A stretch of DNA of 64,000 nt, from NCBI GenBank assembly GCA_964035545.1, contig OZ037766.1, positions 19,704,767-19,768,766 of the forward strand. Direction: 5' to 3'. The stretch is from Bugula neritina. Taxonomy: Eukaryota > Animalia > Bryozoa. A program made the translations under genes and the position numbers. The notes beneath the pieces were generated by a model. The model had not been told where the DNA came from, ran no database searches, and worked only from the letters and a program-made list of their open reading frames with translations. Positions 15,326 to 58,623 of this stretch are shown in pieces (within the stretch, counting starts at the first letter, position 1; the number at the start of each line of letters is the position of its first letter).

Positions 15326-18300
15326 TTATCTGCAACCACAGGTTTCCACAATCATATTGTCATAATTTTGCATAGTTATAATTCTGTCATCTTGATGGTA
15401 TAATATAGTCATTCTAGCAAGTTTATGAGGAACACAACATGGCGGTTTCACTTTCTCAGGATAATTATAGTTTGATACAGACTGTAGAACAGCATGATTG
15501 CTTGCTGCCAGGGAACTAGTTAGAGGAAATGGACATAAACCTTCACAGAAATTAACATTTAGTCCCTCAGGAGCAACGATCCACTTTGCCCATCCTAAAG
15601 CATGAAAGCTGATGTATAGTGGTTTGACTTTACAGTAATCAATATTTTGTTGATTGGCTGTTGAAAAGTAATTTTTATCATGTCTTCTGCGTAGCCTTCG
15701 CTTAGGATTTTTAGATTTTAATTCAGTTGTTAAAATTGTTTTGTGTTTTGGTTTCTTCCTGATAATTTCCTCTTCCATATTTACAGAGCTGTCTATAATA
15801 CTTCTCTGGCTTCTTAAAAGCAGGTCTGTACATTCTTCCATTGTCTGTAAGTTGTCTTCTCCTAAGAATTCTATGCATCTTTCTCTGTTCAACTGCTGCG
15901 TTCTGCTCTCTTCATTCAGGAAGTTCTTCACCATATAATCTATGTTTTTTCTGTGCTTCTTTTTGTGCTTATCTTTTTTTCGTTTGGCTGCAAACAAATC
16001 CAACGTATCCTTTCAGTAGTGAACATAATAGATTATTAATATTAGCAGAGAACTTTACCTGCTTTATTTGGAAAAATGACACGAGCTAAATCAAATTAAA
16101 GCTGCTAGTAAATGAGCTCTAGGTTTTTTTGCTAAAAGCTTCATTTAAATAACTATGGGCTGATGTTGCTACAAATTTTGCAAATAAGAAAGTGTTTTTT
16201 GTCACGAAAACTTTTAAGGTCACGATTCTCATTCACCAATAGCAAAATTAAAAAAACTTTTCGCTTCAATTTAACCAATAAAGTGATTAGCAAAAAATAT
16301 CAATGTTTGAACAAGCGATGCCATTAAGTTCTGTTACAATAAATTAAATTAATAATAAGGTAATACAGTGTGTAACTATACAACTAAAGTAACTTATTAT
16401 ACACTGACCAATTGACACTGTAAGAAAGTCTTTAAAATAGCGCTAGTTTTAGAATATGCTGTAGTCATAGTAAGACAACTCATGTTAAGTCAGATTATCA
16501 TTTGGAAGACATAATCTGTGTCAAGTACAAAGTCTAATTTCAAATCTCATTGACTTGCAGATCTATATTTTACCCAGTTAACAGTCTTGAAGTTTTCTAA
16601 TTCAAGAGGTTGTATATATTTAGGAGAAATTTATGAATAGTAATATACACATTTCACAATTTAAAATACTATAGTAAAGAAAATAATTTATGAACTTTTA
16701 CTTTTAGCTATATTGAATTTATGCTCGACTGATAATATCAAAATAAGATGGCTACCGTTACACAGTTTAGCTACTACTTTGCTACAAAAACCATCATAAC
16801 TCTCAAATGCTTGAATTATGGTTGGTTGCATAATTTGATTCAAGTATCTTTTATTCAACCAATAACAAATATGGTACGCAACGAGCAATGATTAAAATCA
16901 AATAAAGTTATTTCATATTATACCAAATTGCTTGAATAACGAAGGTTTGTAGCCAGTCATTTAAGATTTTCAAAATAAAATAATCAAGTGAGAAAGTCGA
17001 GTCAAATCAAGTCAAGGCGCTTTGAGTGTTTATTCAATGTGACATGGACTTTGTTTAAATGACCTAAATGCAGAGCTATGCTTTGAATGCACTAAATGAA
17101 TTTTCGGACTTGCAATTGCTTACTTTTATCTGTGTACACTGTGAAGACTGGTTGTTGAGTCTGTGGAGACTCTCCTCTCTGTATGAAGGTTACGTGAGTG
17201 CCGTTGACATGGTTAGTGAAGGAGTCAGTAGCGGTCAATAGCATACCTGCATGTAAATGTAACCTTATCTGTTATTACACATATGATTTATTATAACTTT
17301 GTTAGCATTGCAGTTGTAGAGCTACACATAACCTTAACAGGTGTTGTTCGTTTTTAGAGCTTTTTTAAATATCTGCACGATTTTCCAAAAATATAAAGAT
17401 GAATCACTTTACAATATAGCATATGACGTGATGCATATAAAACCGGAATGCAGTTTAAAAAACATGTTGCTTGCTTACATGATAGGCTGCAGTCTCAAAT
17501 CAGCAAAGAAAAAATTATAAATTGAAAAAATTTTCGCTCCAATACCGAAATATAAACTCAATACTTGTATAGTACATTAGCATAAAAAGTAAGATTTAGT
17601 TAGGTTGGAAATTCTTGACTAAACTTAGTAGGTGAGCATAGATGGCAAAGGCTTTTTATGTTCCTAACAGGCAAGACTCAAACTGATTGGCTTATACCCT
17701 CAATAAACTAAAATAAAATCAACTCAGATTCATTTAGTAAGAGCATTGATGGTAATTTGTTTTGAGCCCTATAATTTTGCAAACATGGTTTGCTTGTTTG
17801 AAGTTTCTACTTATTAGATACAACAATTATTCTATAAAATATAGACTTAACCAAACTATCTCTTTGCGCCTACATTAAGCATGTGAACAATATATATGCA
17901 TACTAATTTCAATACTCCATTATCATCACCATAAGTTTGTAATCACTACAGAAAGCCTCAATAACCTTTATTTTTATGAGAATATTTGGTCCAGTCTTTC
18001 ACTGCGTCTTTTAGTCCTGATTTAAACACAATCCACTGCCCGGTGTAAGCAGACACCTTCTGCCTCTCCAGTAAAACAACTCCCGGCCCAGGACCTCCAT
18101 CAGGGCCGTACAGACTTGACTCATCAATAATCTTGTACAGACTCAGCTACCAATTACAAATATGCTGGTCATAATAGTAATCAAAATAGAGAATAAATGT
18201 GTAAAAATTACATTTGTAAGAAGCAACATGTTGCAGAAAGTTGCAGCAAGAAAGCCCAGGGCTGCAGTCATTCTGATATCATTACAAAGAAGTAACATAA

Positions 18301-21117
18301 AGAGATTGTGATAATAGCATCAAATTTCCCACTTAATGTGTATACCAATTTTAGTGCACTGTACATTTATAGATGAACTTCTCTGTTTTATAATAATATT
18401 TAATATGAATAAATTAATCACTTGAACATGTATAATTACCACCATTTTATTATAATTAATTAAAGTTGTAGTTGTACGACATTTAGAAGCAGTACCGACT
18501 TTGTTGTGGACATAGCTTCTGAATTTTGGTTTCATTGCAACTTGCATTCTACATCGAGTATCCATCAATCACACTATGAATCACCCAATGACACAGGCTA
18601 TTGTAATATGAGTAAAGTTTATTAATAACACACAGCGTTCAATAGATGTAATCCTTACCGTAACAAAATGTGTTTTCAGTGTTTGTAGTATTGGTGCCCT
18701 CTTTTTATAAATATGAAAGTTTGCTTCAATGATGTCTTCTGATTCATTAACAGCTGTAAGATTGAACCAAAACTGCATACGTCTTTGGGTTTCTATAAAA
18801 TAATTATACCAGAAATTTATTTTTGCGGACTTAGCTAAGGACAAGACAAATGTGCAGCTGTGCTTAAGCTGGTTTGACCAATTTTCTTGTTTGACACTTG
18901 ATAAGAGCTCCAATCCTTCTAAGCATGTGGCCAATTAGGCAATATTTCAATTTTTATCTAATTAGAGTAGATTAATTTACATCTGGGATTCAAGCTATTT
19001 ACTTGGCACCGCCATCTTGTTGTCAGGGAGACAAAATAAAAGCTTTGTAAATAAGTTTATACAGAAACATCAATTTATTAGCAACAGTTGAAAGATAAAA
19101 AGCATTTGTGATTTCTGCAAATATACCCTTTTATGTAATCATTGTTATTTTATGTATGTTGATTTTCCATTAGAGTAATGACACATTCCATTAGCTTTTT
19201 TATCACAGTGCATATTGTAAATTTAAAATATTTATTTAGTTTCAAATATTGGAACCATTTTTATAAGAGAGTGCAGCTGCACAAATGGAAATCTTAATTG
19301 AATGCTATATTTTTGGTAACCTTTTTTCATAAAAATAACAAGCTAGTATGATTGTTAAACTCAGGGTATTATAGGCCTATTTATGACTCTATCATATTGC
19401 AGTGAGAAAATCATTGTTACACACCTACTTTATATTCCCTTTTCAACGTGTTTGCAGAGCTATCAGGTTTGTATTTATACGATTAATCAATCTTTGACCC
19501 ATTTTCACAAATGACACTAATCACGGAACTAACAATAGTTTGAACCTTAGAGACAACCGATTGCCAAGAGTTAAAATCTAATACTATGCAGTTTTTAAAA
19601 ATAAGACATCTGTCTTTTATGCAATGTTATTACAGTAATTATTATATCAAAATATACTTAAAATCCAAATAATAGTGATGAAACCTTTAAATTACAAGCT
19701 CTCTTATGAAAATTGAAGGATTTTGAAATAATGAAATATTAATTGTATTAATAGCTTGAATTATATCTCAGCAGTTTGAAACTATGTGTCAAGCAATAAA
19801 CTACAGTGAGAAGCTTCACCGCACTTTACTTCTACACACACACACGCACACACGCACACACGCGCACACGCGCACACGCGCACACGCGCACACACGCACA
19901 CACGCACACACGCACACACACACGCAAACGCACACGCACACACACGACAGACGCACACACACGCACATACAGATGCACACATAGACGCACACACAGACGC
20001 ACACATGCACACACGCACACAGATATATACACAAATAGTTGATTTGGAAATTCAACTAAGATTGTGGTTTGCAAGACTAAATAAACCTTTAAAACTCTAA
20101 AAAGCACCAAGGAGCCCTTGTTTACTCCCTACACCCAGCAAAGAACACTACATTGTACTCAGGTGTTAAAGGTGAAAGAATTTTTTACACCTGGCCAGAC
20201 ATGTGTGTTCACTGGTGTTATTTAGAATATAGCATGCTTAAATCTATAGAAAGCAGATTAATGTGAAAGATACAAACAATGCCAGTATTGCATTTAAGCT
20301 TTAGAAATATGTGGACACCATTTCATTATGTAATACTGGTTCTTTGACAAAGGAATTCTAATTGATCATCAAGTTTAATTACTTAGTGTGTTCTTTACAT
20401 TGCTAGCTTCTCAGTCTTTCTCAGTCTTTCTTGTAGTGCTTAAAATCTAGCCTAGTGTTTATTTACTACAATATAAGTAAAGTAATTGCTCAACAAATAA
20501 ATCATCTATGCCATTGCAGAAATGAAAGCCAATACACACCATATAATACAAACAACCTAAGAAGTGTCTTATAATCTACTCTGTATATAATGTTGTCAAC
20601 TCAAATTACACCAGCAAATAGACATAATATGCATCAACGGTTTGGTTTCTTTGAGTAAACTTCACTTGAATTTTCTTAAGTTGTTAACACAATTTTTGCA
20701 ATTTTTTTATAATTTTCACGTTGTACTACTAAATGATTGGGGTGAGCTATTAAATTACGCACATGCTAGCCGCTTACCATAATAATCTTCTAGTCCTCGG
20801 ATGAAATCGACTTCAAATGGTGCCGATCTCTTTTCTCTTCCTGTTGATTTGTCTGCTAATAAGCTGTATAATTTATCCATGACATATGGGATTTGTACAT
20901 CGGTGGATAGTTTTTTGGGTTCACCGGTTTGCAGGACGTATTGCAGCAGGTTCCTTTTATACACATCAACTTCTATGGCTGACACGCTGCTCTTCTCAAT
21001 ATCTGCGGAGTCATACTCTCCCAGAGCTTCATTTCCCCACTTATCGATTTTACTCAGCCGGGATGACACCCGATTTAAAAGTAGTAGAATGAGGAAAACA
21101 CATTGCACGAGTGTCAT
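15326..21117 (-). CDS. TGF-beta superfamily ligand, BMP subfamily (ADMP/BMP2-4-like, divergent)
   Basis: Exons 21117-20778 (signal peptide MTLVQCVFLILLLLNRVSS), 18792-18659, 18146-17966, 17246-17124, optional microexon 16085-16059, and 15987-15326; phases agree. Prodomain motifs PYVMDKLY, FWFNLT..EANFHIYK, GQWIVF..AVKDW and QPVFTVYTD. Furin site KRRLRRR. Mature 7-Cys knot CKVKPLYISFHALGWAKWIVAPEG..FCEGLCPFPL..NHAVLQ..CCVP..NYDNMIVETCGCR. Confidence 0.93.
19834..20032. repeat. Compound (CA)n/(CACG)n microsatellite in BMP intron 1
   Basis: Visible run cacacacgcacacacgcg...; it explains five spurious overlapping ORFs. Confidence 0.95.
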
Positions 21118-23879
21118 AGTGCTTGAGCAGCTATTTATCCTACCGTATGATAGCAGTAATTTTACACCGGAAAAAAGCAAGGTGCTATAATGTTTTAATT
21201 ACAATCTTACCTTATTGAAGGCATCAAAACAGGTAGTTTTATATCCTTGTTCAGTTAGTTTTCTAAACTAAAGTGTGGTTTATATACTATACCATCTGTT
21301 GTGAACGCTGTTCGATACTACGGAGCGATACCTTGCATTGAATGTTGTTGTGGGTATAAGAGAGCGGAGAAATAGCTGCCTTCTTGTGTAGGATATAGTT
21401 CCAGGTATGTTTAAAAAGAGCACCTGCTCACTGATATCTTCAATGCCTATTCAATCTTTTATGTTCAATTAAAACGATGCCTCTCATATATATGTATAAT
21501 TGTCACTGAGCTATTATATGTGCATGACCAATACCGTGCCTTGTTTACCTTAATGAGGCCTTGTTTGCCTTGGGTACTTAGTTTTCACATTAAATAATCA
21601 TAGTGTCTACTAAACTGCTTTGATAGTTTGGATCTATGCAGCTGATAGGTGCATGCTTACTGTCACATTTAAGAGTGCGATGTATGCAGGTGCTAGCTGG
21701 TATTCTACACCCTCATGTAGTTATCTTCACAACCATCTGGATGCCATAGATGTCATTGTTTCTTGATGGGTTTGGTAAAGTTATATCAAAGTGTCAGGAA
21801 AATGCTTTGCCGCCTCCACTGCTTTTGCACTTAGTACTAGGTCGCTAAAAGATTTAAAACACGCCTTATTTACCACTCAATTATTTTTGGATCAAAAACC
21901 TTAATTATAACACCTTGTAAAGAATAAAAAGTCATTAATCCATCACTTAAAATGTTTAGTGTTGATCAATGTCTTGGGCTATAAGGTTGGTATATTAGTG
22001 CAAACATTATGCAAATCTTTTCTTGCTTATTTAAAACTGCACTGTGTGACAGAAATGTGGCTAACCTCTGGCTAAGGTGTGAATCGATGGAAATAACTCT
22101 GCACCTGATTGTTTTCTGGCCAAGTTATAGTCTGGCATGCATAGCAATGTGCTAATTTTGCGGAAATGTTATATTTATAATATAGTATGTATATTATATA
22201 TTATATGTATAACTGAATTTGTGTAAACCAGCTGTTCTAGGACTTCTTCCTTTCTTAGCTTAGAAAGTTTTACAATTTCCAATGGTAAAAAATAATGTTT
22301 CTAGCAACGCATATTGGAAAGTTGACGCTGTTTAACAAGCCAGAGCACTCAAACTTATATATTTTGGAAGGGTTCCCACATTCATCATAACATATTCCAG
22401 ACTGTGGCAAGTTTTTTATCAATGGTCAAACAATAAATACTGTTTTAAGTGGAAATTTTATTTAAAACTATTGAATCTTAAAATTTTCATCGACAATTGG
22501 TGAAAAGTACTGCTTGTAGTAAAGGTGGTAAAATACTGATAACTGCAATAGGTCTATTCAAACTATCATCACATTTAGTCTAGATCTCAAGTGACAATAG
22601 CATGTTATAAGAACCCCTGAGTATGATCACAAGGAATCGAAGACATTAAACTAATTAGGCAATCTTAGAAATTTGCTTTCAAGGTTATAATATAATCTTG
22701 AATCTATTACTATCTTCAAACAACAAGATTCCTCATACGTAAGATTATTCAAGAGCAAGTAAAGTAACTGGTTTAAGATGATGTAATTACAGCTTATCTC
22801 AACTAAACATCATGGTTAATGCAGGTGGTAACAATAAACAACATTTCCTCTTTTTTGCCATTATAATACAACCATACAGGGCTGGTACCTGTAAATTGTG
22901 GAAAACATGGTTTTTATAGCTGCTCTGTGTGCTATGTAATGGATATTTGAACACCAATGAAGTTCTAACTGTACACAATCGAGCTTGAATGCTGTATACA
23001 TTGCACTCAAGTTTCTGTAAGTGATGTATGATATAGCATTCACAAGTTGAATGTTGGAGAAGTATAACTTAATTACTTTTGGTCATCAGATTTTCAAAAA
23101 CGATAGAAGTTCATTCTTTAATTAGTTTAAACTTCAATTATAGAACATATATTATACAATCTATAGTTTTACGTCAGCTTTTTGATAACAAGCCTGCATG
23201 TCCACCTAATTTGTACATGGCCTACCAAGTAAAGGAAACTGAACTGAGTCGTAAATGTACTTTAATCAATCGTAAACTAACAATGCTCACAACCTTGGTA
23301 ATAATGCATAGCATACCTGTCTGGTCTAATTTAATTTTTTTTCAAAGTAACTAGTTGTATGAGAAAGAAATTCTGCAATGTGGCCACAGAGCTGCTTTAG
23401 TATAAAGTAGATTATAAAACTGGTAAAAGTTGTGACTTAAGGTTATAACTTATAAATGACTTTAATAGACACTTTGAAATGTAAGACAATAGTTAAACAT
23501 AGCAATGTGTCTCCAAATAGATTATGTTGTTTTCAATACTGTATTCAAAGCACAGCTTTCTTACATAAGGAGGGATAACTCCATATCTACTAAAGGTGAT
23601 AACTTTTCAATGTATTTAACACTTAGGAGAAATGAACTAGTAGCTCTGTCTTCCGACGATTCTTATTTTACAGATTATATAAAAATATTTGCACCTACCC
23701 ACCTCCCTCCTCCAAATAAACAAGAGCTGGTTTGATCACCAGCCGATCAGTAATGAAATGGGACTGCATTGAAAAACATTGAGATTTCAGCATACACACT
23801 GATAGATTTATTAAGGCCAGGGGGCCTGATGTAATCGTTGCCAATCGTAAAGCAGAAACAATGAGAGCTGCTCGTAGAG

Positions 23880-42711: not shown

Positions 42712-43841
42712 GGAAAAAATCCGAAACAATTTATGATATCTATCTAGCCTTGCCAAATTACCAAATTATGGTAACCACAGATTTTTACTAAGATTTTCTT
42801 ATTTATTTATTTTCTTACTATATAAATATGTTGGCTTATTTGAGAAAGTTGTACACATAAATAACTGTTGGCATATGTCATTCCCAGAATTCAGAAATAT
42901 TTATTTGCATAATTATCAAAACCGATATATAGTTAGAATGGAGCCAAACTGAGTCACAGGTGGAGATAATGACAATATTCATCCGCTAACAATACCACAT
43001 ATTTATCAGGAAAAATCACACTTTTGTTGCTTACCTTTTATCTGAAAATCTAATCAAAGGGCTTAAACAATTCTTTTTAATATTTGAATCTAAAGATCTA
43101 GTGCAGCTTACCAAAAGCCTGGAGAATTCCCTAATATAGTTAATAAACAGGCTGATAAGAAAGAATGCTCTGTGACTCATTACAGGACAGGAGCTTCATA
43201 TTTCCTAGCAGTCATTATTAAATTCACACTATTTTTATAATTGGTAATAATTATTACTTGCAGAAGTTGTTGAATTTGCAAACTAATTATAATATCTAAA
43301 CAATTATTTATTACACAACACAAGAAAGGCAACTTTATATCATGCATGTGCATTTTACTTACAGTACATATTATATAAAAATATATTTATAAGATAGATC
43401 TGTTTTATATCTTACCTTGTGATTAGTTGTTTGAGGAAAATATAATTAATTGTATTACAGATTAGGTTTGCTTAAATCTTTAGAGGCATGAGACTACAAT
43501 GGTTATGCTATACTAGAATATTATTTTACATAATGTGTTAAGTTGGCAACATGCACACAGTATGTCAAGTGTTGGTATTTTAAACATGGTAGAAAATGTA
43601 TTGAATATGTTATTTGAAAATTAAAATTAAAAACCTTCATAACATGAATAAAACATTATGGCTATCTGATGCATTAAATTTGTTTTTATATAAACCTGTA
43701 TAATAGTTTGACCAATAATAAATACTAAAGAGAAAAATAAAAAACTTGATTAAAAAATTTAATTAATGAAACAAAAAAGGGTTGCAGTTTATCTTATTAA
43801 TCATATGCAACGCAGGACTTTTAATCGCCTGTGCAAGAGTT

Positions 43842-43872
43842 TCACAAATTCACAAATTCACAAATTCACAAA
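43842..43872. repeat. (CACAAATT)x~4 tandem repeat in the putative 3' UTR of the LRR gene
   Basis: cacaaattcacaaattcacaaattcacaaat. Confidence 0.85.
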
Positions 43873-43997
43873 TATTGTTATAAAATGAATATATTATTTA
43901 GCTTGAATATGGTTAGATAATTATGTTTCAAGAATAGATGGAAATAATTACAGCAATTACTTGAAGTCATCACTTGTAGCCAATATTACTAACTCCT

Positions 43998-46926
43998 TTA
44001 ACTAGATGATCTCATTACTTCATACTCTGCATTTGTCTCCTCATGGTTGCCTAGAGTCATGTATGTAGGTTGATTATCTGAAGAGTTGTCTTCTCTTACT
44101 TTCAGTGACTCATAATGTTCACCATCATTGTGTGCTTTCTGAATGTCTATGTAAGCTTCATCAATTGAAACCTTTAAAGGAAACAACAACTTTGGTCAAT
44201 TTTTTTTTCTATTAATATGACATAATAATACTTTTTGCTTTTTTTGTAACTTGGGTACCTAAGAAAAAAAGTTCTATCCACAGTCTCTATCAGAACAAAC
44301 TACATGAGTCAGAAAACTAGTAATTGATGAAATAAACAATAGCTTGTAACAAACAATAATTTTCACTCTCTTTCCTACAAGCATGGCACTCTCCTACTTC
44401 AATAATTTTGCTTTCAGCGGTTTACTAACATTTGCTATATGTTTACTATAACTTTGGGCTACTATATTTCCGTATACATCTGCCCAAAATCGTCCTATTT
44501 GCTTGAATTATCAATTATCTTTACTTGTTGAAACAATTTTTTTTGTACATGCATTATTCTTCTTATAACAACTTCATATGCAGTAGTCAATTTAAAACAT
44601 ATAATTCATATATACTCTGTACTTATAAGTTTAAATTTAAACAAAATATAAGCAAAAAAAATTTTGCTAAAAGACATGACATTATTGATTTGCTCTCACC
44701 TGTTCTTTCTTAGCTTGTTTTCTGAGTTCCTCGTTGATAGGTTGCAAATAGCCATCTGTATTTTCTCTGCTATTGCTATAGTCTGCAACGTCTGCTCTCG
44801 CTAGAAATTCTGGTTTAAGATAGCCATTTGGATCTTGATAAACAATAGAGGTATTTCTTGATGAACCAGGTGGGAGGGGCAACGAGCGGCCCTCCATGGA
44901 CTTTGGTCTGTAAAGGTCATTATACTCATAAATACTTATTATACTTATTCACTGTTTGTATTTGTATTTAAAGCTAATAAAACAAAGTAATTCCTACTAA
45001 GTTGTGTTTATACCTTCACGATTAAATCACATGGTCACGCACAACTATAATGTTTTCTTTTATCTTGTAAACTCTATTTTATCAAATCATGGAAAAGAAT
45101 ACATGACAGGTAATTGTCATATAAAACAATCAACAACTAATGTTTTATCAATACACTTTCTATAATACAAAAATAAGGCTAAACATTTATTTTCCCTACA
45201 TTTTTTATTTATGTAATAATGAGATAATTTGGTGGTGCAGTTATAAAAACATATTTTTATACTTGTCACTTCACCTTTGATCAGGTACAGAGTAATAATG
45301 GCCGCCAGTGTAATATTCATCTTCCTTTATTGATGGTCTCATATTAGGAGTTGTCACCTCATTTTTAATGTTCCTCCTTTTTATACAACAGACCACTACT
45401 ATGACAACTAAGACTGCGATGATCACCCCTGCACTGACCTACCAAAGAAGTTATAAGTTTGATATTGATATTTAGTGTAAGACCTGCAATGTATTGAATG
45501 AACATTGGATGAATCATTATAGAAAGAATGATTTTTATCAGACTAACCGCGACTGCTATAATGATGGTAGTTTGAGAAGAAGGAGAGGGAGGGTCAGCAG
45601 AAGTTGTCTGCACATTTGGTGGTCTTCCTTGTGTCGGTGGAGGTGCAGCTTTTGTTGGTTCAGTAGACTGTGATGACTCGAAGCTGAGTGTGTAATCCAT
45701 GGTAGAGCTGCTAGGCCATGTTGTCTCCGTTGTGCAGACTATAAAATGAAATAAAATAAAATACAGTAAAGTGAAATAAGTTAAAAGGTTTATTGTATTG
45801 TATTTTGATAGGTGATTTGTTATCATTAAATCAGGTTTACAAAATTCATTTGAACTATGAAGTTACTGCAAGTAGTAACTTTTATGTAAGAATATTAGTA
45901 ATATATGTAGGTTGTGCAGGAAATTTCATAAAGTGAAGCTACTAACTACTTGGATTGTAGAAGGCTTCACAATTGTCTAGGACTTTTGTATCATAATCTA
46001 TGGTTACGTTAGGGTTGTCTTGAATCCAATCTTTTAACCACGATATATCACAGTCGCAACTTGGGTCATTATTTCTCCACTCTAATATTGTGAGAGATGG
46101 CAAATTGTTTAACACTCGAGCATCTAAGGTAGCTATCTCATTGTCATTAATGTGAAGTATTGATAGGGAGGTGAGGTATCTAGCAAAAAGAAATAATTTA
46201 ATTTTAACAAACGAAAATACGCAACATCACTGCATGATAAAAGTTAACATAGTTGACATGTATGACTAACACGGGCTGTACTTTATTATGTAGATTAAAT
46301 GTTAAAAATGCAAAACAATAGCATATAATATTTACTTGACATCTTTTCGTTTAATAGACGTGATGGAATTCCGGCTTAAGTACAATCGTTCCAGATTTAG
46401 CAGGGAGCTTGACCTTAAAAACTCTAGATTTCCAATTCCACAACCAACAGCCTCTAGGTTTTTGAGATTTGTCTTCCCATCAAAAGTTTCATTTGCTATA
46501 CATGTCGGCGCACTTAAATCATTAAACGAAACATCTAGTTTCTATAAAAAAAACAGGATTGGCCAAGGTGAATATGTTGACCAATTTACAATGTACTTAG
46601 TTAATAAAACTGCAAAATATGCTAATTGGTAATCAATAGCTGTGTAACTGAGTTTAATAAGAATTAAAAATTAGAGATACTATCAATTAGAATTTAGAAG
46701 CTGCTGCTATAGATGACAACAGCAGATTTGTTGTGTTTGTACTAATGCAATAATTAAGACTATAGCCCTTCCGCATATTCCGAGTGCTGCATGCAACGAT
46801 AAATTAATGTAACGCAATTATGGCTCATAGCACTTGTTACTTGCACTGGCCAACAAAATTACATCCAAAATAATATAGTATTATAAACTAGTAGTTTATA
46901 AATGAAACGCTTTAAAGGTAAACTAC

Positions 46927-47008
<82 letters not shown>

Positions 47009-49153
47009 ACCTGAAGTCCTGACAGATGATCAATGTTGGCAACATCTATTAAAAAATCAAGGTCTGTAATACTGGTCTCCGTTATTCGCAATATTTGTAG
47101 ATTTTCCAAGAATTGGAAATGTGCAGCCGTAACACCAGAACTACTGAGACCAAAGTTATTGGAAATATCCAAAACTCTAAGAGATTGTAGAGACTTTTGC
47201 TGTAGAAATTTTGTGGAAAAGATGTCATTTGTGCTCAAATACAGTTCGGTGACTGTCACATCACTGCAAGGTAGAAGAATATTAGTTGTTATACGAGCAA
47301 ATGAGAAAATATGCGAGCAGATTATTCAGCAATAGACAGCTCTTATATTTAATGCTACTAAGTACATGTAGTTGATTCTCAACTTTCAATTTAAATTTGA
47401 AGTACACCTGCATGCATTGTTTCAACAGGTAACAAAAATATATAATGCAATAACTAGCAGTACTAAACTACAATGCCAAAATTTCAAAACTACTTGTATG
47501 ACAATATATTAATATTCTAAAGCATTTAAGTACAATAGTATATATGCAATAGTAAACAAGTTTGATTAAATAAGTAATTAAATTGCTATTACTATGGGTC
47601 TCTAGTGGTGAGCATAAAATGATGTGATGGAAATAGAAAATAAATTTGTAGCCTACATAAAATATGTCGTCTGCAGTCACATCTCACTAATCCCCTAGGC
47701 ACACTTTGCCACACCATAGACCGTAACGTAGAATATCAGCTATTTTTACAAATGTCCGAGCTTCCTGAACAACTTTTCGGTACGTTAAGATCAAGCACTG
47801 CTTGATTCAAACAAGTTGCGGCAGGTTCTTATTGTACAGAAAGATGTTCGAATCAATCATACCCAATAGCACACTTTGCAAACTTCAGCTCGACACATTA
47901 AAAATGGTTTACATACAGTGTGGCAAAGTGTGTTTAGGAGGTAAATCTTCACCTATTCTTTGCACTCAAATTGCATTTGCATGATGAAACAGACAATAAT
48001 GGATTACTAAATACTTATATAGGAAAATTGGTGATGTGTGTAAAATGGGATCACATTTCATACTATTGACATGAAGCTAAGCTAGGACATCTTTATTTAC
48101 TGCTTAATGCTAAAGCTAATAAAAACCCACTGGGTATCTGCAGTACAGTAGTCACTAGGTGAAGATATTTTGACTATAGTAATAGCGTTTATGAGATATT
48201 GAATGCTATAAACAAATCTTTTCACTGTCATACATATAGGGAATAGGATCTGTTATTCAACTGTAGCTATATTGAGTAGCCTAGACCTACGAACTATGAA
48301 TAAAGCAAACCAACAAACCTGAATGCAAGTAAAGGTATAGTGGAGATGTTGTTATGTGTCAGTGATAACTTAAATATCTTGGTGCCATTCGCAATATTAG
48401 GAAAACTGTTTACTCTACTATCACAATTAATAGTCCATCCTTTCTGAAGATCATTTTCATAAACGCACAAAGCACACGCCTGCAACATATTCTATAGATA
48501 AACGTAACAAAAACTTCCTCTTCATTTCTATAGAGTATAGATAATACATTTATTCATGCACACTAAGATTTAATGAAAAGGGAGGCAACAAACGTTGAGC
48601 ATGGGTATTACCTAAAACAATTCCGGCAAACATTGTGACAGCTACTAGAAAGTAGCATATATTCCCCACAAAGAGTTATGTACCAAACTATCAATAAAGG
48701 TAAACTATCTCACATTGCCTGGAACACAAATAAAACTTTTACATTTGGGCAAAGTCAGTCACATGACTAGTTTAACAGTTGAAGTGTATTTTATCTTCCC
48801 AAATTCAACTAAAAAAATTGTTTTTGATTATTTCCTTTTAGGCATTCTATTTAGAAGGCCTTCTTGCAGGTGCATGCATATAACATTCTCAGTTTAAATG
48901 TCCCCAAAGTCTAAAACAGCATAAAATGAATTTATTTTGTATAATTATTTGATTGCCTTGAAAAATAAACAGAAACTATGGTATCAATAATGCTAACTTT
49001 TAGATAGGTGATTTAATATGCCAAAGACTACTACTGTACCTCAGTTGAAGTAAATGGACATGCAAAAGAAAGTTTGAAACTTGTCAAGATCACAAGTGCC
49101 AATGACAGTATCTTTGTAGATAGCTCAGTCTTTGGGTAGCAAATATAAACCAT
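43998..49153 (-). CDS. Leucine-rich repeat type-I transmembrane receptor (LRRNT, ~9 LRR, LRRCT, S/T/P stalk, TM, tyrosine-rich tail; no TIR domain)
   Basis: Nine phase-consistent exons: 49153-49040 (signal KILSLALVILTSFKLSFA-CP), 48491-48319, 47263-47011, 46541-46336, 46179-~45947 (WRNNDPSCDCDISWLKDW LRRCT), 45738-45548 (mucin-like stalk), 45438-45275 (TM VSAGVIIAVLVVIVVVCC-IKRR), 44907-44700, and 44171-43998. LRR strands include LRVLDISNN, LQKLDVSFN, LERLYLSRN and LSILHINDN. Confidence 0.9.
46929..47005. repeat. (TA)n microsatellite next to the LRR exon 3 donor
   Basis: Long perfect tatata run starting about 5 nt inside the intron. Confidence 0.97.
47691..47941. mobile_element. piggyBac-like MITE, copy 2 (internally deleted), in LRR intron 2
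   Basis: CCCCTAGGCACACTTTGCCACAC ... GTGTGGCAAAGTGTGTTTAGGAGG. Shares CCGTAACGTA, ATCAAGCACTGCTTGAT and GACACATTAAAAATGG with copy 1. Confidence 0.75.
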
Positions 49154-49730
49154 CTTCGAGCACAAAATTTGCAGATTCAATTGGCTGAATAATAATAATA
49201 AGCATAAAATACTGTTATTACTAGTAGTGACAGTGGGAGATAGTTAAACAAGATTGCTCTAACAATTATTTGATATTGTCTGCTAGAGAACAATACCAAT
49301 CATTTGTGTAACTTGTTATTAGATTACAATTGGCCACCTGAGTCTTATAAATGACAATGCATCAACCTGTAAACCTGTAAAAACAGGGAAAACTGAAACG
49401 GTAAAATGTTCCTATTAGCCTGGCCAGTAGAACGTTGTGCTATCCAGGCCATATACAAGGTAAACCCAAAATTGGTTACTATAGGAAATCTTATATTTAA
49501 AAATTATCTGTACTTTGGCAGAAACCTCCAGTGCTAATTGTCTAACACAATTAGCAGTTTAATAAGCATGTGCTATGTGTTGTCAAGTACTATGAGTGTC
49601 GCAGCTTATAATGCTCAACTCTTAAATTTGACAAACTGTAAACATGCTTACAGTATCTCACAGAAATCTTTAAAAGTGTTGAAAGAGCATGCTACGTGTA
49701 ACAGGAATATATTTTATAGAAATATATAAG

Positions 49731-49790
49731 CTGTGCCCCATCTGAATAAGTCCTTAGCCGAATTTAACGAAACACTCCTTCTATCAGGCA
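49731..49790 (+). mobile_element. SINE internal fragment
   Basis: CTGTGCCCCATCTGAATAAGTCCTTAGCC matches the SINE body at ~35760 and ~52130. Confidence 0.6.
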
Positions 49791-51304
49791 GCGAAACTGG
49801 ATACAAGTGCAACAAAAAAGTATATAATATAGACTTGAAGAGAAACTATCTTGCATACTGATACATCATATAGCAACCTAGATTTTGCTTACTTTGTGAG
49901 TAGTAGCACAATTAAATTAGCAGTTATAAAACCAAACAAGGCAGAAATAATATCTTCCCTATATCATAATTGCTTGACACAAAGTGAGATATATATATTA
50001 CCACTAGTGAAGTATATAAGATAAATATTTGGTGTAAAAGTATTTTTAAATTTAAGTTTTAGCCAACTTATCCATTCATTTGTAAATGTTGCACCTGGTA
50101 AAATATAGTATACTGATCAAACCAGTTTATAAATAATATATAGCTATAACTTTAATGCAATTATAATGTTACCTGCAATTACCTTGAGGACTCTTTCGCA
50201 ATCTTACTAGCTAGTGCTAAGTCAATGACACAGCATTTATTAGAGCTATGAACTGTGAGAACACGCCCCAGTTAAATAGAAAGGCTTTGAATCATGACTA
50301 GTGATATTGATTTCATATCCATTGTGAATGATCACTCTATGTTATATCACAATAATGAATTGTCAATACTTTACACTAATGCCTATTCATTATTTACTCA
50401 ACAAGCAAAGCATTATTCCAGTTATAGGTATTAAATTGTATTACTCATATATCAACATACTTGCCTATTAACTAGTTCCATGCTCTCAGATTGCAATTAT
50501 GTCACCTCAGGTTGCAAGTATGCTGTATGAATAAGCAACAGTGACAGCTGCTGTATTTCATTTCTTTGTATTTATGTCTCTTAATTTGGTAAGCTATAAA
50601 GGCTGACAATGCTGATTTCCAAAGCCAGAAATTTTTCTTAGGACTTAGGACTAAAATATAATAGCATAATGACCACTGACACACTGTAAAAAATTGATCG
50701 CAATATTATTTTAAGATATTTACACATGCACAACCTTTTAAAGAAATCATAACCAATTAAAATGGCAATTTAAACAAATTATTTGATGATGGATTATGGA
50801 TTACATTGCTAGAACTTAAAAACTTAGTATTACACAACATGAAGCTCTAGTTTTATTAGACACATTATTACAAATTATGTACAAAACAATAAATCTAATA
50901 GTCATATTACAAACTGTAATCCAGAGTTTCTTGGGGGAAAATGAAAGGCTGTTTGACACTTGAATTACCTTAAAATAAACACATTTGGCTTTGTTATTGA
51001 CAAATATGCATGAAATGATGTATTAAGTTTATTCAGTTTTTATCGAAACGCTGCTTAAAAAAAAGAAAAAGACTATAATGCTTCATTGACCATTAATAGA
51101 CATTTGCAAATCAAAACACAGGAAATATTTAACATTTGAATAAATGGAAGGTACCTAATAATAATTTGAAGCCTAGGTTGGAATTACAGAAATTTAAGGG
51201 AGGGGGAGCTAGCTGAACACTATGGATTATGAGAGCCTAGACAAAGCTACATAATATGTCATCTTATTTATTCACCATAGGTAGCACAAAGATTTCCAGA
51301 TATG

Positions 51305-56800: not shown

Positions 56801-58623
56801 GTAAAACACCAATAAGTACACCTAAATAATCAAAGTTCTTTTTAATTTTGCTTCATTTCCCATGTTTTTTCCTAATTATTCAGCTACTTTTGGTTGCGGA
56901 CTGTTACGGTTTTTTCGTAACGGTCCGCACTTCTAATAAGCTAAATATATAAGAAAAAACATGGGAAATCAAGCAAAATTAAGAAGAACCTTAATTGTTT
57001 TGGTATATTTATTGGTGCTTTACTAGTTTTGGGCAAAAAGTCATGTTCATTACCAACTAAATTGTGAAAAATAGCTGAAAACCGAAGATATCCAGTGTGT
57101 ACTAAATTAAGTAAAATGATATAATTTATTTTAGTCAAACATTAGTAACTTGGGTGATGCATTTTGGTATGGGACAGACTTGGCTTGCTTCAATCATAGT
57201 AACGATGACAGCTCTTTCTACAATCAGTTTCCGGTGATAAATCTACACATACTTAGCACCGCCCAACAGGAAGTGGTTCTCTATGTTTCTCCCGTGCAGT
57301 ACCTTAGACCTGTACCCCCACTGACCTCTACAGATAAGGATTGCTATAAGGTGGCCGTCGCTAGCTCTTCTGCTGGAACAGTTATAGGTAAGTCTGAGAC
57401 AGGTACCTGCCATAACCAACCCCTCAGGGACTAACTAGTAACTAGCCATTCATATTTATTTACACTAATGCATAAAAATAATGCATCTAAAATACGGTTT
57501 AGAGAAAAACCAAATATTATTTTATTGTAATAAACTAGTTGGACATATAAGGTGGCAAGGATGTATGCCCTGTGTGTACAATAGTATGGCTAATCTAAGT
57601 GCAAGGTCTGAGAGTCCGCTACCAGTTGCTACCCCTGGCACTGAGGCTATGCCACATCATCTAGTGAGGGCTGTATTTTGAGCATTATACATCATTACAA
57701 CTCTCTAGTTGAGATAGAAAAGTATTCTGAAGTTGGGCCAACTGGTATTCAACCTACCTCTCAGTGCAGATGTTGTTGTGGATAATCGAAGGAATAAGTG
57801 TGAAAATCATGTGATGTAAGCTAACTGTTTTATAGAATTCAATATAGTGAACTATCTTATCCAAGGAAGAGCTACATAAATGCGTAGCTATACATTTGAT
57901 AGATGAGTAGGGTGTTGGGTTGTTTATTCAGGGACCAGAAGGTGTTGGGAAGAGTTTGTGAATATTATTCTAATGATTTGTTCTGAACGGCAACGGTTTT
58001 ATTTTGATATTTTAGACGATCATTGCCCCCTGTTTCAACACAATATTGTATTTTACCCTGTATATCAAATAGATATAAAGTAAAAATAGACCTATTTATA
58101 ATTAATTATTGATTTTCATCAGTCTATCTTTGGCATACTATAATTAAGATAGTTTTTAGTATATCTTTTTGTATTGATGTCATTATAACTGTTCAACATC
58201 TTGCAGATACATTTACCTCCCCTTCATCTTATCATAGAGTTATCAAGCTTTATATTTGTCTCGCTTGTTTTAGGTGCTGTTATCATGGAGGGCTATTTTG
58301 CTTACTTTGACCGGGAGAATGGATCAGTGCTTCTTGCTGAAACTACTTGTAGTCCAAGAATCCCTTCTGTTCAGCCCAGTGCAATAGTTGGGTATTTTCC
58401 CAGTTCTAACACTTCCAGTTGTATGTATGTTGCAAAACACAACAAGGTTTTACCTACTTACGCAATTGTACTAATAGTTGTAGTTTCTCTTATTCTTGTT
58501 GTACTACTTTCTCTTCTGATAATTAATTTAATATGCAAACTTAAGCACAGGAGGCGACGGAGAATGCAATCTGATACTAACTTCTATAACTTAGTAGACA
58601 ATAGTTTTGATACTGAATATTAA
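53807..58623 (+). CDS. BACE1: Beta-secretase (BACE/memapsin)-family membrane-anchored aspartic protease
   Basis: Exons 53807-53930, 54534-54713, 55072-55266, 55633-55817, 56202-56333, 57135-57387 and 58274-58623, all in phase. Motifs GYYIEIEIGTPPQ, catalytic DTGSSNFA and DSGTTNLRLP, flap YTQGHWKG, WQGILGLAY, FSMQLCG, QYLRPV and GTVIGAVIMEGY..FDR. All six BACE disulfide Cys are present, plus a C-terminal TM. The gene is probably co-orthologous to vertebrate BACE1 and BACE2. Confidence 0.93.
56704..57119. mobile_element. Foldback/MITE-like element with ~165-bp imperfect inverted arms and a central GC-rich hairpin, in BACE intron 5
   Basis: Left arm TCATTTTACTTAATTTAGTACACACTGGATATCTTC...TTTCCCATGTTTTTT mirrors right arm AAAAAACATGGGAAA...GAAGATATCCAGTGTGTACTAAATTAAGTAAAATGA. 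Centre GCGGACTGTTACG-gttttt-TCGTAACGGTCCGC. Confidence 0.85.

Follow-up and report, generated by a model that had tools for sequence, protein, structure and literature searches.

A Small Leucine-Rich Repeat Receptor Gene of Bugula neritina with a Conserved, Tyrosine-Rich Cytoplasmic Tail

Introduction

The closest described system to the receptor reported here is BbLcLRR of amphioxus, a leucine-rich repeat (LRR) receptor in which tyrosines of the ITIM or ITIM-like type are phosphorylated by Lck and recruit SHIP1 and SHP1/2, with an inhibitory outcome (PMC8211107). BbLcLRR sets a precedent for an LRR receptor that signals through Src-family kinases and SH2 proteins and not through a TIR domain (PMC8211107). 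A second point of reference is Draper-I of Drosophila, whose ITAM-type tail is phosphorylated by Src42A and read by Shark (PMC4503800).

Here, we describe an LRR receptor gene of the bryozoan Bugula neritina, located in a stretch of 64,000 nucleotides of contig OZ037766.1 (hereafter, the window). The initial annotation of this DNA had proposed a Toll-like receptor (TLR)-like ectodomain coupled to an ITAM-like phosphotyrosine tail, and had set this architecture against the usual TIR signalling of LRR immune receptors. A premise that LRR receptors lack phosphotyrosine tails is too strong, because BbLcLRR has ITIM-like tyrosines phosphorylated by Lck (PMC8211107).

Gene Structure and Transcription

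The gene is encoded on the minus strand (49153..43998), and its nine exons, as read from the sequence, have canonical GT..AG borders and consistent phases. The predicted product of 566 amino acids is a type I membrane protein, in which a signal peptide, an LRRNT cap, eight LRRs, an LRRCT cap, a Ser/Thr/Pro stalk, one transmembrane (TM) helix, and a tail of 162 aa follow one another. The exons and their contents are listed below.

Exon 1, 49040..49153, minus strand: ATG at 49153; signal peptide; first Cys-Pro of the LRRNT cap; donor GT at 49039
Exon 2, 48319..48479, minus strand: remaining LRRNT cysteines (C40, C43, C57) and LRR1
Exon 3, 47011..47263, minus strand: LRR2-LRR4; Pfam LRR_4 (2e-6) and LRR_8 (6e-5); within the 1278-nt RNA contig
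Exon 4, 46336..46541, minus strand: LRR5-LRR7; Pfam LRR_4 (1e-5); RNA joints 46179 to 46336 and 46543 to 47014
Exon 5, 45950..46179, minus strand: LRR8 and LRRCT cap (C286, C288, C315); Pfam LRR_8 and a weak LRRCT_2
Exon 6, 45548..45738, minus strand: C323 of the LRRCT; Ser/Thr/Pro-rich stalk, aa 324-378; start of the TM helix at I380 (45565)
Exon 7, 45275..45438, minus strand: remainder of the TM helix to I404 (45382); KRR stop-transfer; EYY and HYYSVP (45315-45283)
Exon 8, 44700..44907, minus strand: RSLPLPP (44888-44868); YQDP, GYLKP, YSNS, and GYLQP (44840-44739)
Exon 9, 43998..44171, minus strand: YIDI-x9-YESL (44153-44103); YMTL-x9-YEVM (44063-44013); stop codon 44000-43998

The signal peptide of exon 1 can be read from the sequence as a hydrophobic core, ILSLALVILTSF (aa 15-26), and a cleavage-like site between SFA and C. 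Exon 7 gives a Pfam match to a TM_ErbB1-like TM-juxtamembrane segment (9e-6) and is bordered by RNA joints on both sides (44907 to 45275 and 45438 to 45548).

The initial annotation had made splicing of the tail exons to those of the LRRs a condition of its reading, and the RNA bears this out: A single spliced contig of 1278 nt from the sister lineage spans exons 8 to 3, and two further joints link exons 9 and 8 (44168 to 44697) and exons 3 and 2 (47263 to 48319). Exon 2 is additionally covered by an RNA contig of 163 nt (48319-48481), and at the other end of the gene the RNA contig continues beyond the stop codon into the 3' UTR. The spliced contigs of the sister lineage are ~95% identical to the gene, and intron bins are at zero depth. 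Over exon 1, the depth of the RNA run is ~50 across 48919-49312 and zero in the adjoining intron bins; this exon and its junction with exon 2 are based on the model and on RNA depth, with no RNA joint listed. No Rfam match was found in 43000-50000.

That the locus is a pseudogene, or that the model joins unrelated open frames by chance and does not describe a functional gene, is highly improbable. Such an explanation could draw on the exon 1-2 junction, which is not directly seen in RNA, and on the failure to find the full-length product in protein collections, but it has to contend with the spliced RNA (exons 3-8 in one contig, and the joints to exons 9 and 2). The genomic contig of the sister lineage (L016), moreover, retains all splice sites in exons 2-9 and the reading frame, its indels all being in frame, and dN/dS in both the LRRs and the tail lies far under 1. 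This is a real, expressed gene, and its structure, transcription, domain order, and motifs are established here.

A Generic Small LRR Ectodomain

Four cysteines are present in each cap as read from the sequence (C31, C40, C43, and C57 in the LRRNT; C286, C288, C315, and C323 in the LRRCT), and eight LRRs were counted in the ~215 aa between them. The single TM helix consists of 25 hydrophobic residues (I380-I404) and is followed by KRR. Pfam matched neither an FN3 or Ig domain nor a WSC domain in this gene, which has a single LRR block.

In a sequence search of the PDB, exon 5, encoding LRR8 and the LRRCT, showed the best matches to lamprey VLR (3e-9), FLRT3 (7e-8), and Slit2 (1e-7), and the matches to TLRs were the weakest (TLR8, 5e-4; TLR7, >0.1). 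Sequence similarity marks the ectodomain as a small capped LRR module of a generic kind, closest to these three proteins and of a similar size class, with ~6-10 repeats between Cys-rich caps. The likeness extends no further than the generic cap and the repeats and does not imply orthology; no named LRR adhesion protein was found to be an orthologue, the PDB matches being confined to the cap. VLRs are assembled somatically and are either GPI-anchored or secreted; Slit is also a secreted protein; and FLRT carries an FN3 domain and differs in its tail.

The initial description of the ectodomain as TLR-like was not specific. Toll-like receptors share with the Bugula protein an LRR ectodomain, a single TM helix, and type I topology, but their ectodomains are long, with about 19-25 LRRs, and they possess a TIR domain, whereas the Bugula gene encodes only eight capped LRRs, has an LRRCT exon nearer to those of VLR, FLRT3, and Slit2 than to that of TLR8, and has no TIR. 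True LRR-TM-TIR genes are present elsewhere in the B. neritina genome, with large single-exon ectodomains (ORFs of ~700 aa) and a TIR exon next to them, within 1 kb. These long TLR-like ORFs themselves show no TIR by Pfam, and it is the genome-wide TIR search that places the domain in the next exon. For the LRR gene described here, no exon has a Pfam match to TIR, nor does the part of contig C2 covered by the window, and all nine TIR matches of the genome lie elsewhere.

Tyrosine Motifs of the Cytoplasmic Tail

The tail (K405-S566) contains 12 tyrosines in 162 aa, or 7.4% compared with 2.4% in the ectodomain, a three-fold enrichment. All motifs listed in the initial annotation, including the 12 tyrosines, could be located in it: two tyrosine pairs, YIDI-x9-YESL (Y516/Y529) and YMTL-x9-YEVM (Y546/Y559); four YxxP sites, namely the similar GYLKP and GYLQP (Y469, Y493), YQDP (Y463), and YSVP (Y434); and YSNS (Y483) and RSLPLPP (R447-P453). 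The tail had also been described as free of enzymatic and TIR domains, in agreement with Pfam, which gave no domain match in the tail exons, be it TIR, kinase, or any other.

Significance of the motifs was estimated from 20,000 shuffles of the tail, with many motif types tried. Four YxxP sites occur in 0.35% of the shuffled tails (P = 0.003), two YxxΦ pairs in 1.4% (P = 0.014), and an RxxPxxP site in 4%; YxxΦ motifs number five against two expected (P = 0.03), and YxN and YxxM show no excess over chance. The tail motifs are thus real, and taken together they exceed chance moderately, the four YxxP sites appearing as the best-supported feature by this measure. Short tyrosine motifs predict weakly, and YxxΦ reads equally well as a clathrin-adaptor sorting signal.

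The pair YIDI-x9-YESL, annotated as ITAM-like, fits the relaxed pattern with a spacer of x6-12, a pattern that is found in 4% of shuffled tails (P ~0.04), but it is not a canonical ITAM: The tail contains no match to YxxL/I-x6-8-YxxL/I, and its sole YxxL/I pair has a spacer of 9. Matches to the ITIM or ITIM-like pattern (I/V/L/S)xYxx(I/V/L) number zero in the tail, and NPxY is likewise absent from it. We do not claim that the two YxxΦ pairs arose by duplication within the tail, as only 3 of ~20 aligned positions are identical by eye.

Conservation and Copy Number

Conservation was assessed against a single closely related sister lineage (dS 0.13-0.25), the only one in which an orthologue could be reached. 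All 12 tyrosines of the tail, the four YxxP sites, and RxxPxxP are kept in this orthologue, and in YIDI-x9-YESL both tyrosines and both hydrophobic residues at +3 are retained. The distal tail is under strong purifying selection, with a dN/dS of ~0.05 (4 nonsynonymous against 17 synonymous changes; binomial P = 7e-9); in exon 8, 1 of 69 aa is changed and the other nine substitutions are synonymous. The LRR ectodomain has a dN/dS of 0.18. The stalk and TM helix look unconstrained, with dN/dS above 1 (~1.5 in exon 6, where the sister lineage carries an in-frame insertion of 18 nt), and the substitution pattern of the tail differs from that of the stalk and TM helix (Fisher P = 9e-5). Identity of the introns between the lineages is just 88.8%. 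The strong constraint on the tail is evidence of function, not of phosphotyrosine signalling specifically.

Homology searches were run exon by exon. Among 1.84 billion representatives, the only relative of exon 8 was a fragment from the sister lineage (P0002), and word searches with exons 9 and 5 likewise retrieved only a sister-lineage fragment (P0001 for exon 9), full-length spliced relatives falling outside the searched lengths; metagenome contigs scanned with exon 8, in a collection that may lack records close to this genome, gave no match. P0003, P0004, and P0005 were rejected as relatives of exon 8, each having matched in 6-12 short stretches, and inspection of P0003 and P0005 revealed unrelated, repetitive proteins in which chance matches to short repeats had added up. 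None of these searches detected a relative of the Bugula tail beyond the species complex, and in this sense it is an orphan.

Within the B. neritina genome, tail exons 8 and 9 each occur once, and the LRRCT exon shares 39% identity with its best paralogue. A paralogue family and a diversifying, allorecognition-type ectodomain, both considered at the outset, were not found: The gene is single-copy in the genome search and its LRRs evolve under purifying selection, so that it resembles neither an immune nor an allorecognition receptor of the diversifying kind.

A single-copy, conserved gene is what would be expected of a housekeeping adhesion molecule, and the protein might act in adhesion or guidance, in a role like that of FLRT, LRRTM, Slitrk, or Capricious/Tartan, its tyrosines serving mainly as YxxΦ sorting and endocytosis signals or cytoskeletal contacts without a phosphotyrosine relay. 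We regard this as possible but somewhat unlikely. Among caps, those of VLR, FLRT3, Slit2, and LRRTM are nearest to the LRRCT exon, the excess of YxxΦ motifs would suit sorting signals, and other LRR-Ig-TM genes of the same genome likewise have tyrosine-bearing tails. However, we found no named adhesion family to which the protein is orthologous, it lacks FN3 and Ig domains, and the resemblance in the PDB is to a generic cap. The four YxxP sites and the acid-flanked tyrosines are, moreover, typical of kinase substrates rather than sorting signals, and 12 conserved tyrosines exceed what sorting needs.

Signalling Partners and Proposed Function

A locus encoding a Shark-type kinase with the order SH2-Ank-SH2-kinase was found in the genome (G000:C7, ~14.371-14.378 Mb), and at least seven SH2-plus-kinase loci were found as well. 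The presence of the Shark-type kinase bears on the possibility of an activating LRR immunoreceptor, in which YIDI-x9-YESL would function as an ITAM: A Src-family kinase would phosphorylate it, the tandem SH2 domains of Shark/Syk would bind it, and it would replace TIR signalling in the recognition of pathogens or nonself. In addition to the kinase gene, the fit to the relaxed ITAM, the acidic residues upstream of the pair, and the retention of its key positions in the sister lineage speak for such a role; the lack of an ITIM leaves a motif set of the activating type, and Src-ITAM-Shark signalling has a firm invertebrate precedent (PMC4503800). The spacer of 9 lies outside the canonical 6-8, however, and the relaxed pattern occurs in 4% of shuffled tails; the ectodomain is not TLR-like; and a single-copy gene with an ectodomain under purifying selection is unlike the expanded or diversifying families of immune receptors. 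Overall, we consider this role unlikely. Its more specific form, an activating lophotrochozoan LRR immunoreceptor with a noncanonical (x9) ITAM on an LRR ectodomain of VLR or Slit size, read by the Shark-type kinase, is slightly more doubtful still.

We favour instead a small type I receptor whose tail most likely acts as a multi-site phosphotyrosine docking scaffold, a reading to which we give about an even chance. The capped module of eight repeats would be the ligand-binding part, held on a mucin-like stalk, and the domain-free tail is probably disordered. Binding of a ligand or clustering of the LRRs might lead to phosphorylation of the acid-flanked tail tyrosines by a Src-family kinase, upon which the four phosphorylated YxxP sites would recruit SH2 proteins of the Crk/Nck/Abl type. 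A tandem-SH2 protein, for example the Shark-type kinase, may bind to the two YxxΦ-x9-YxxΦ pairs, and an SH3 domain could dock at the RxxPxxP site. Such a scaffold would act on the cytoskeleton, in adhesion, engulfment, or migration.

Comparison with Known Phosphotyrosine-Signalling Receptors

To our knowledge, the recognition biology of this colonial animal is almost unknown, and the LRR gene and the Shark-type kinase offer a compact, single-copy, and testable receptor-kinase pair. At present, the protein is an orphan receptor whose tail is constrained and whose signalling is a hypothesis at the level of motifs, and its value is that of a candidate for a binding or chimeric-receptor test. Should the tail signal through phosphotyrosine, it would be a lophotrochozoan addition to the very few LRR receptors that use Src and SH2 proteins as opposed to TIR; the one that we found in the literature is the inhibitory BbLcLRR of amphioxus (PMC8211107). 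If the x9 pair were indeed read as an ITAM, an LRR recognition fold would have been joined to the Src-ITAM-Syk pathway independently, outside the chordates.

BbLcLRR shares with the Bugula protein its invertebrate origin, type I topology, and an arrangement of LRRNT, few LRRs, LRRCT, TM helix, and a domain-free tail (PMC8211107). No sequence relationship between the two was found. The ectodomain of BbLcLRR has a WSC domain and its tail ITIM or ITIM-like tyrosines, whereas the Bugula protein has neither and its motifs are of the activating or adaptor type; the tyrosines of the BbLcLRR tail were shown by experiment to be the signalling element, whereas for the Bugula tail such a role is predicted from its sequence. 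Draper, in turn, combines an EMI/EGF ectodomain with an NPxY motif, whereas the Bugula protein, whose function is inferred, has an LRR ectodomain and no NPxY. Both Draper-I and the Bugula protein are invertebrate surface receptors without an enzymatic domain, and the genome of B. neritina has a kinase gene with the domain order of Shark.

Gene Model and Expression

The window is AT-rich and intron-bearing, with a G+C content of about 32%. A leucine-rich repeat (LRR) gene was modeled on its minus strand, from 49153 to 43998, from stop-free frames and splice signals; it has GT..AG at every border, consistent phases, and 566 codons in total.

Exons of the LRR gene (frames and splice signals)
49153-49040, minus, exon 1
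48479-48319, minus, exon 2
47263-47011, minus, exon 3
46541-46336, minus, exon 4
46179-45950, minus, exon 5
45738-45548, minus, exon 6
45438-45275, minus, exon 7
44907-44700, minus, exon 8
44171-43998, minus, exon 9

As read from the sequence, the protein has a signal-peptide-like start, followed by an LRRNT cap (four Cys, divided between exons 1 and 2), eight LRRs spanning exons 2-5 with matches to Pfam LRR_4 and LRR_8, an LRRCT cap (four Cys), a Ser/Thr/Pro stalk of 55 aa, a transmembrane (TM) helix of 25 aa divided between exons 6 and 7 and followed by KRR, and a cytoplasmic tail of 162 aa for which Pfam reports no domain. A pyrimidine-rich tract ending in CAG (49187-49193, minus strand) lies some 35 nt before the ATG and could be 5' UTR or a trans-splice acceptor.

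The initial annotation, which proposed a TLR-like ectodomain joined to an ITAM-like tail, was to fall if the tail exons were not spliced to the LRR exons. They are: one public RNA-Seq run, labeled "symbiont metagenome," contains contigs that match the exons at about 95% identity. One of these, 1278 nt long, carries exons 8-7-6-5-4-3 spliced together at the predicted borders, and the 9-8 and 3-2 joints are likewise present. Depth over the intron bins is zero, and the contig with exon 9 extends beyond the stop with no further joint. Exon 1 has RNA depth; the 1-2 joint is absent among the joints listed. The LRR gene is real and expressed, and the chance that it is an artefact is very slight.

Two introns hold repeats. 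Intron 2 carries a high-copy repeat (47540-47933), over which contig depth reaches 950-21,000 in each of the two runs; numerous loose contig ends lie at its borders, and it has no match in Rfam. In intron 3 an extended (AT)n microsatellite (46921-47010) stands right behind the exon 3 donor, where the contigs of both runs break.

Comparison with Toll-Like Receptors

The absence of a TIR domain from the tail was confirmed, as none of the nine TIR matches genome-wide lies in the window. The description of the ectodomain as TLR-like did not hold: in a PDB sequence search the exon encoding LRR8 and the LRRCT had its strongest matches in lamprey VLRs (3e-9), FLRT3 (7e-8), and Slit2 (1e-7), with TLR8 (5e-4) far behind, and exon 3 matched generic LRR proteins only. 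Three of the weak paralogue hits proved to be genuine TLR genes; in each, one long ORF encodes the LRR ectodomain, its LRRCT, and a TM helix, and a TIR match follows within 1 kb.

TLR-type genes in the same assembly
C3:6769185-6770160, plus (locus L009)
C3:5363125-5364056, minus (locus L011)
C2:16425857-16427010, minus (locus L014)

Because of these better matches, and because the genome's own TLR genes differ, the ectodomain is a generic small capped LRR module. A different LRR-Ig-TM gene (locus L010, 589-2061, minus strand; C2 near 16504577) also has a tail with several tyrosines, so among LRR proteins the one described here is not alone in having such a tail.

Tyrosine Motifs of the Tail

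The tail holds 12 Tyr (7.4%, vs. 2.4% in the ectodomain), and all motifs initially listed are present with the spacing reported, among them YIDI-x9-YESL and YMTL-x9-YEVM. Their significance was assessed with 20,000 shuffles of the tail.

Observed motifs and the shuffles reaching that number
Relaxed ITAM (x6-12): 1 observed, 4%
Two YxxΦ pairs: 2 observed, 1.4%
YxxP: 4 observed, 0.35%
RxxPxxP: 1 observed, 4%
YxN: 1 observed, at chance
YxxM: 1 observed, at chance

By these frequencies the best statistical support goes to the YxxP cluster rather than to the ITAM-like pair. The ITAM-like character of the tail thus stands for the relaxed pattern only, the motif scan finding no canonical ITAM (x6-8), and no ITIM, in the tail. 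That the protein is an ITAM immunoreceptor in the strict sense is improbable; that it serves adhesion, or that its tyrosines are sorting signals, is somewhat less so, if still unlikely. There is no support for hypervariability or for an immune function.

Copy Number and Selection

Searched against their own genome at E up to 10, exons 8 and 9 recover nothing but themselves, and paralogues of the LRR8-LRRCT exon reach 39% identity at most; this makes the gene single-copy, and the search for paralogues proposed initially yielded no family. When exon 8 was compared exhaustively with 1.84 billion cluster representatives, only a sister-lineage fragment and repeat noise came back, and neither word searches (exons 9 and 5) nor a metagenome scan turned up anything more. 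The tail is accordingly an orphan, in databases that cover spliced eukaryotic genes poorly.

The sole fragment matched by exon 9 in the word search (P0001, 66 aa) sits on a 4555-nt JGI metagenome contig, L016, alignable to window 48532-43863. Identity is 88.8% in introns and about 95% in exons, indicating genomic DNA of a sister lineage. Every splice site of exons 2-9 is kept, one donor now being GC; this is the exon 5 donor (45949-45948), where a sister-lineage RNA contig is still spliced. L016 further has an in-frame 18-nt insertion in the stalk and a 1-nt deletion three codons upstream of the stop, which gives a longer C-terminus.

Nei-Gojobori dN/dS, window gene vs. L016 (one close comparison)
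LRR region: 0.18 (14 of 284 aa differ)
Stalk: 1.5
TM helix: 2.4
Whole tail: 0.10
Distal 124 aa of tail: 0.05 (4 non-synonymous, 17 synonymous; binomial P 7e-9)

Having the lowest dN/dS, the tail is under tighter constraint than any other region (distal 124 aa vs. stalk plus TM helix, Fisher P 9e-5). The 14 ectodomain differences fall mostly off the LxxLxLxxN strand positions, in an alignment judged by eye. Conservation of the tyrosine motifs was upheld in this one sister lineage: all 12 Tyr are kept, and YSVP to YSEP and RSLPLPP to RLLPLPP leave the YxxP and RxxPxxP patterns intact. The low dN/dS strongly indicates a functional tail, albeit from one close comparison.

Other Features of the Window and Assembly

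An unrelated neighbor (15329-16003, minus strand) codes for a ligand of TGF-beta/BMP type, represented here by its C-terminal cystine knot (Pfam TGF_beta 1.9e-30), with upstream exons perhaps near 18581-21180. At 57150-58623 (plus strand) two open frames terminate with a TM helix followed by basic residues; the part ahead of the helix looks like the C-terminus of a membrane-anchored aspartic protease, a likeness that Pfam did not confirm for these frames. Dozens of places on small contigs of the assembly (e.g., C176:33222-33977, C33:18549-19265, and C66:415702-416457) match complete kinase domains, with numerous in-frame TAA/TAG codons in them; they look like a ciliate-code contaminant.

Proposed Signaling and Known Precedents

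With middling confidence, we regard the protein as a receptor for recognition or adhesion, encoded by a single-copy gene, whose tail, probably disordered, would serve as a docking scaffold with multiple phosphotyrosine sites. The YxxP sites suggest adaptors of the Crk/Nck/Abl type as partners, and the x9 Tyr pairs may form a Shark site. SH2 and tyrosine-kinase exon searches of the genome found an SH2 exon adjoining kinase exons at no fewer than seven loci. One locus is a Shark-type gene:

C7:14371400-14377600 (locus L017, 3439-9602), plus, SH2, three ankyrin-repeat exons, SH2, and kinase within 6 kb

The top PDB matches of its second SH2 are the ZAP-70 and Syk C-SH2 (7e-11), and SYK is the best consistent match of its kinase (about 1e-27). 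This SH2-Ank-SH2-kinase order is that of Shark, so Src-ITAM-Shark signaling as in Drosophila Draper (PMC4503800) would in principle be open to the animal. An LRR ectodomain wired to tail tyrosines already has a precedent in amphioxus BbLcLRR, which is ordered LRRNT, LRRs, WSC, LRRCT, and TM, and whose three ITIM-like tyrosines are phosphorylated by Lck and then recruit SHIP1 and SHP1/2 (PMC8211107). The two proteins have no sequence relationship; the Bugula protein is without WSC and ITIM, and its tail motifs are of activating and adaptor type, whereas those of BbLcLRR are ITIM-like.
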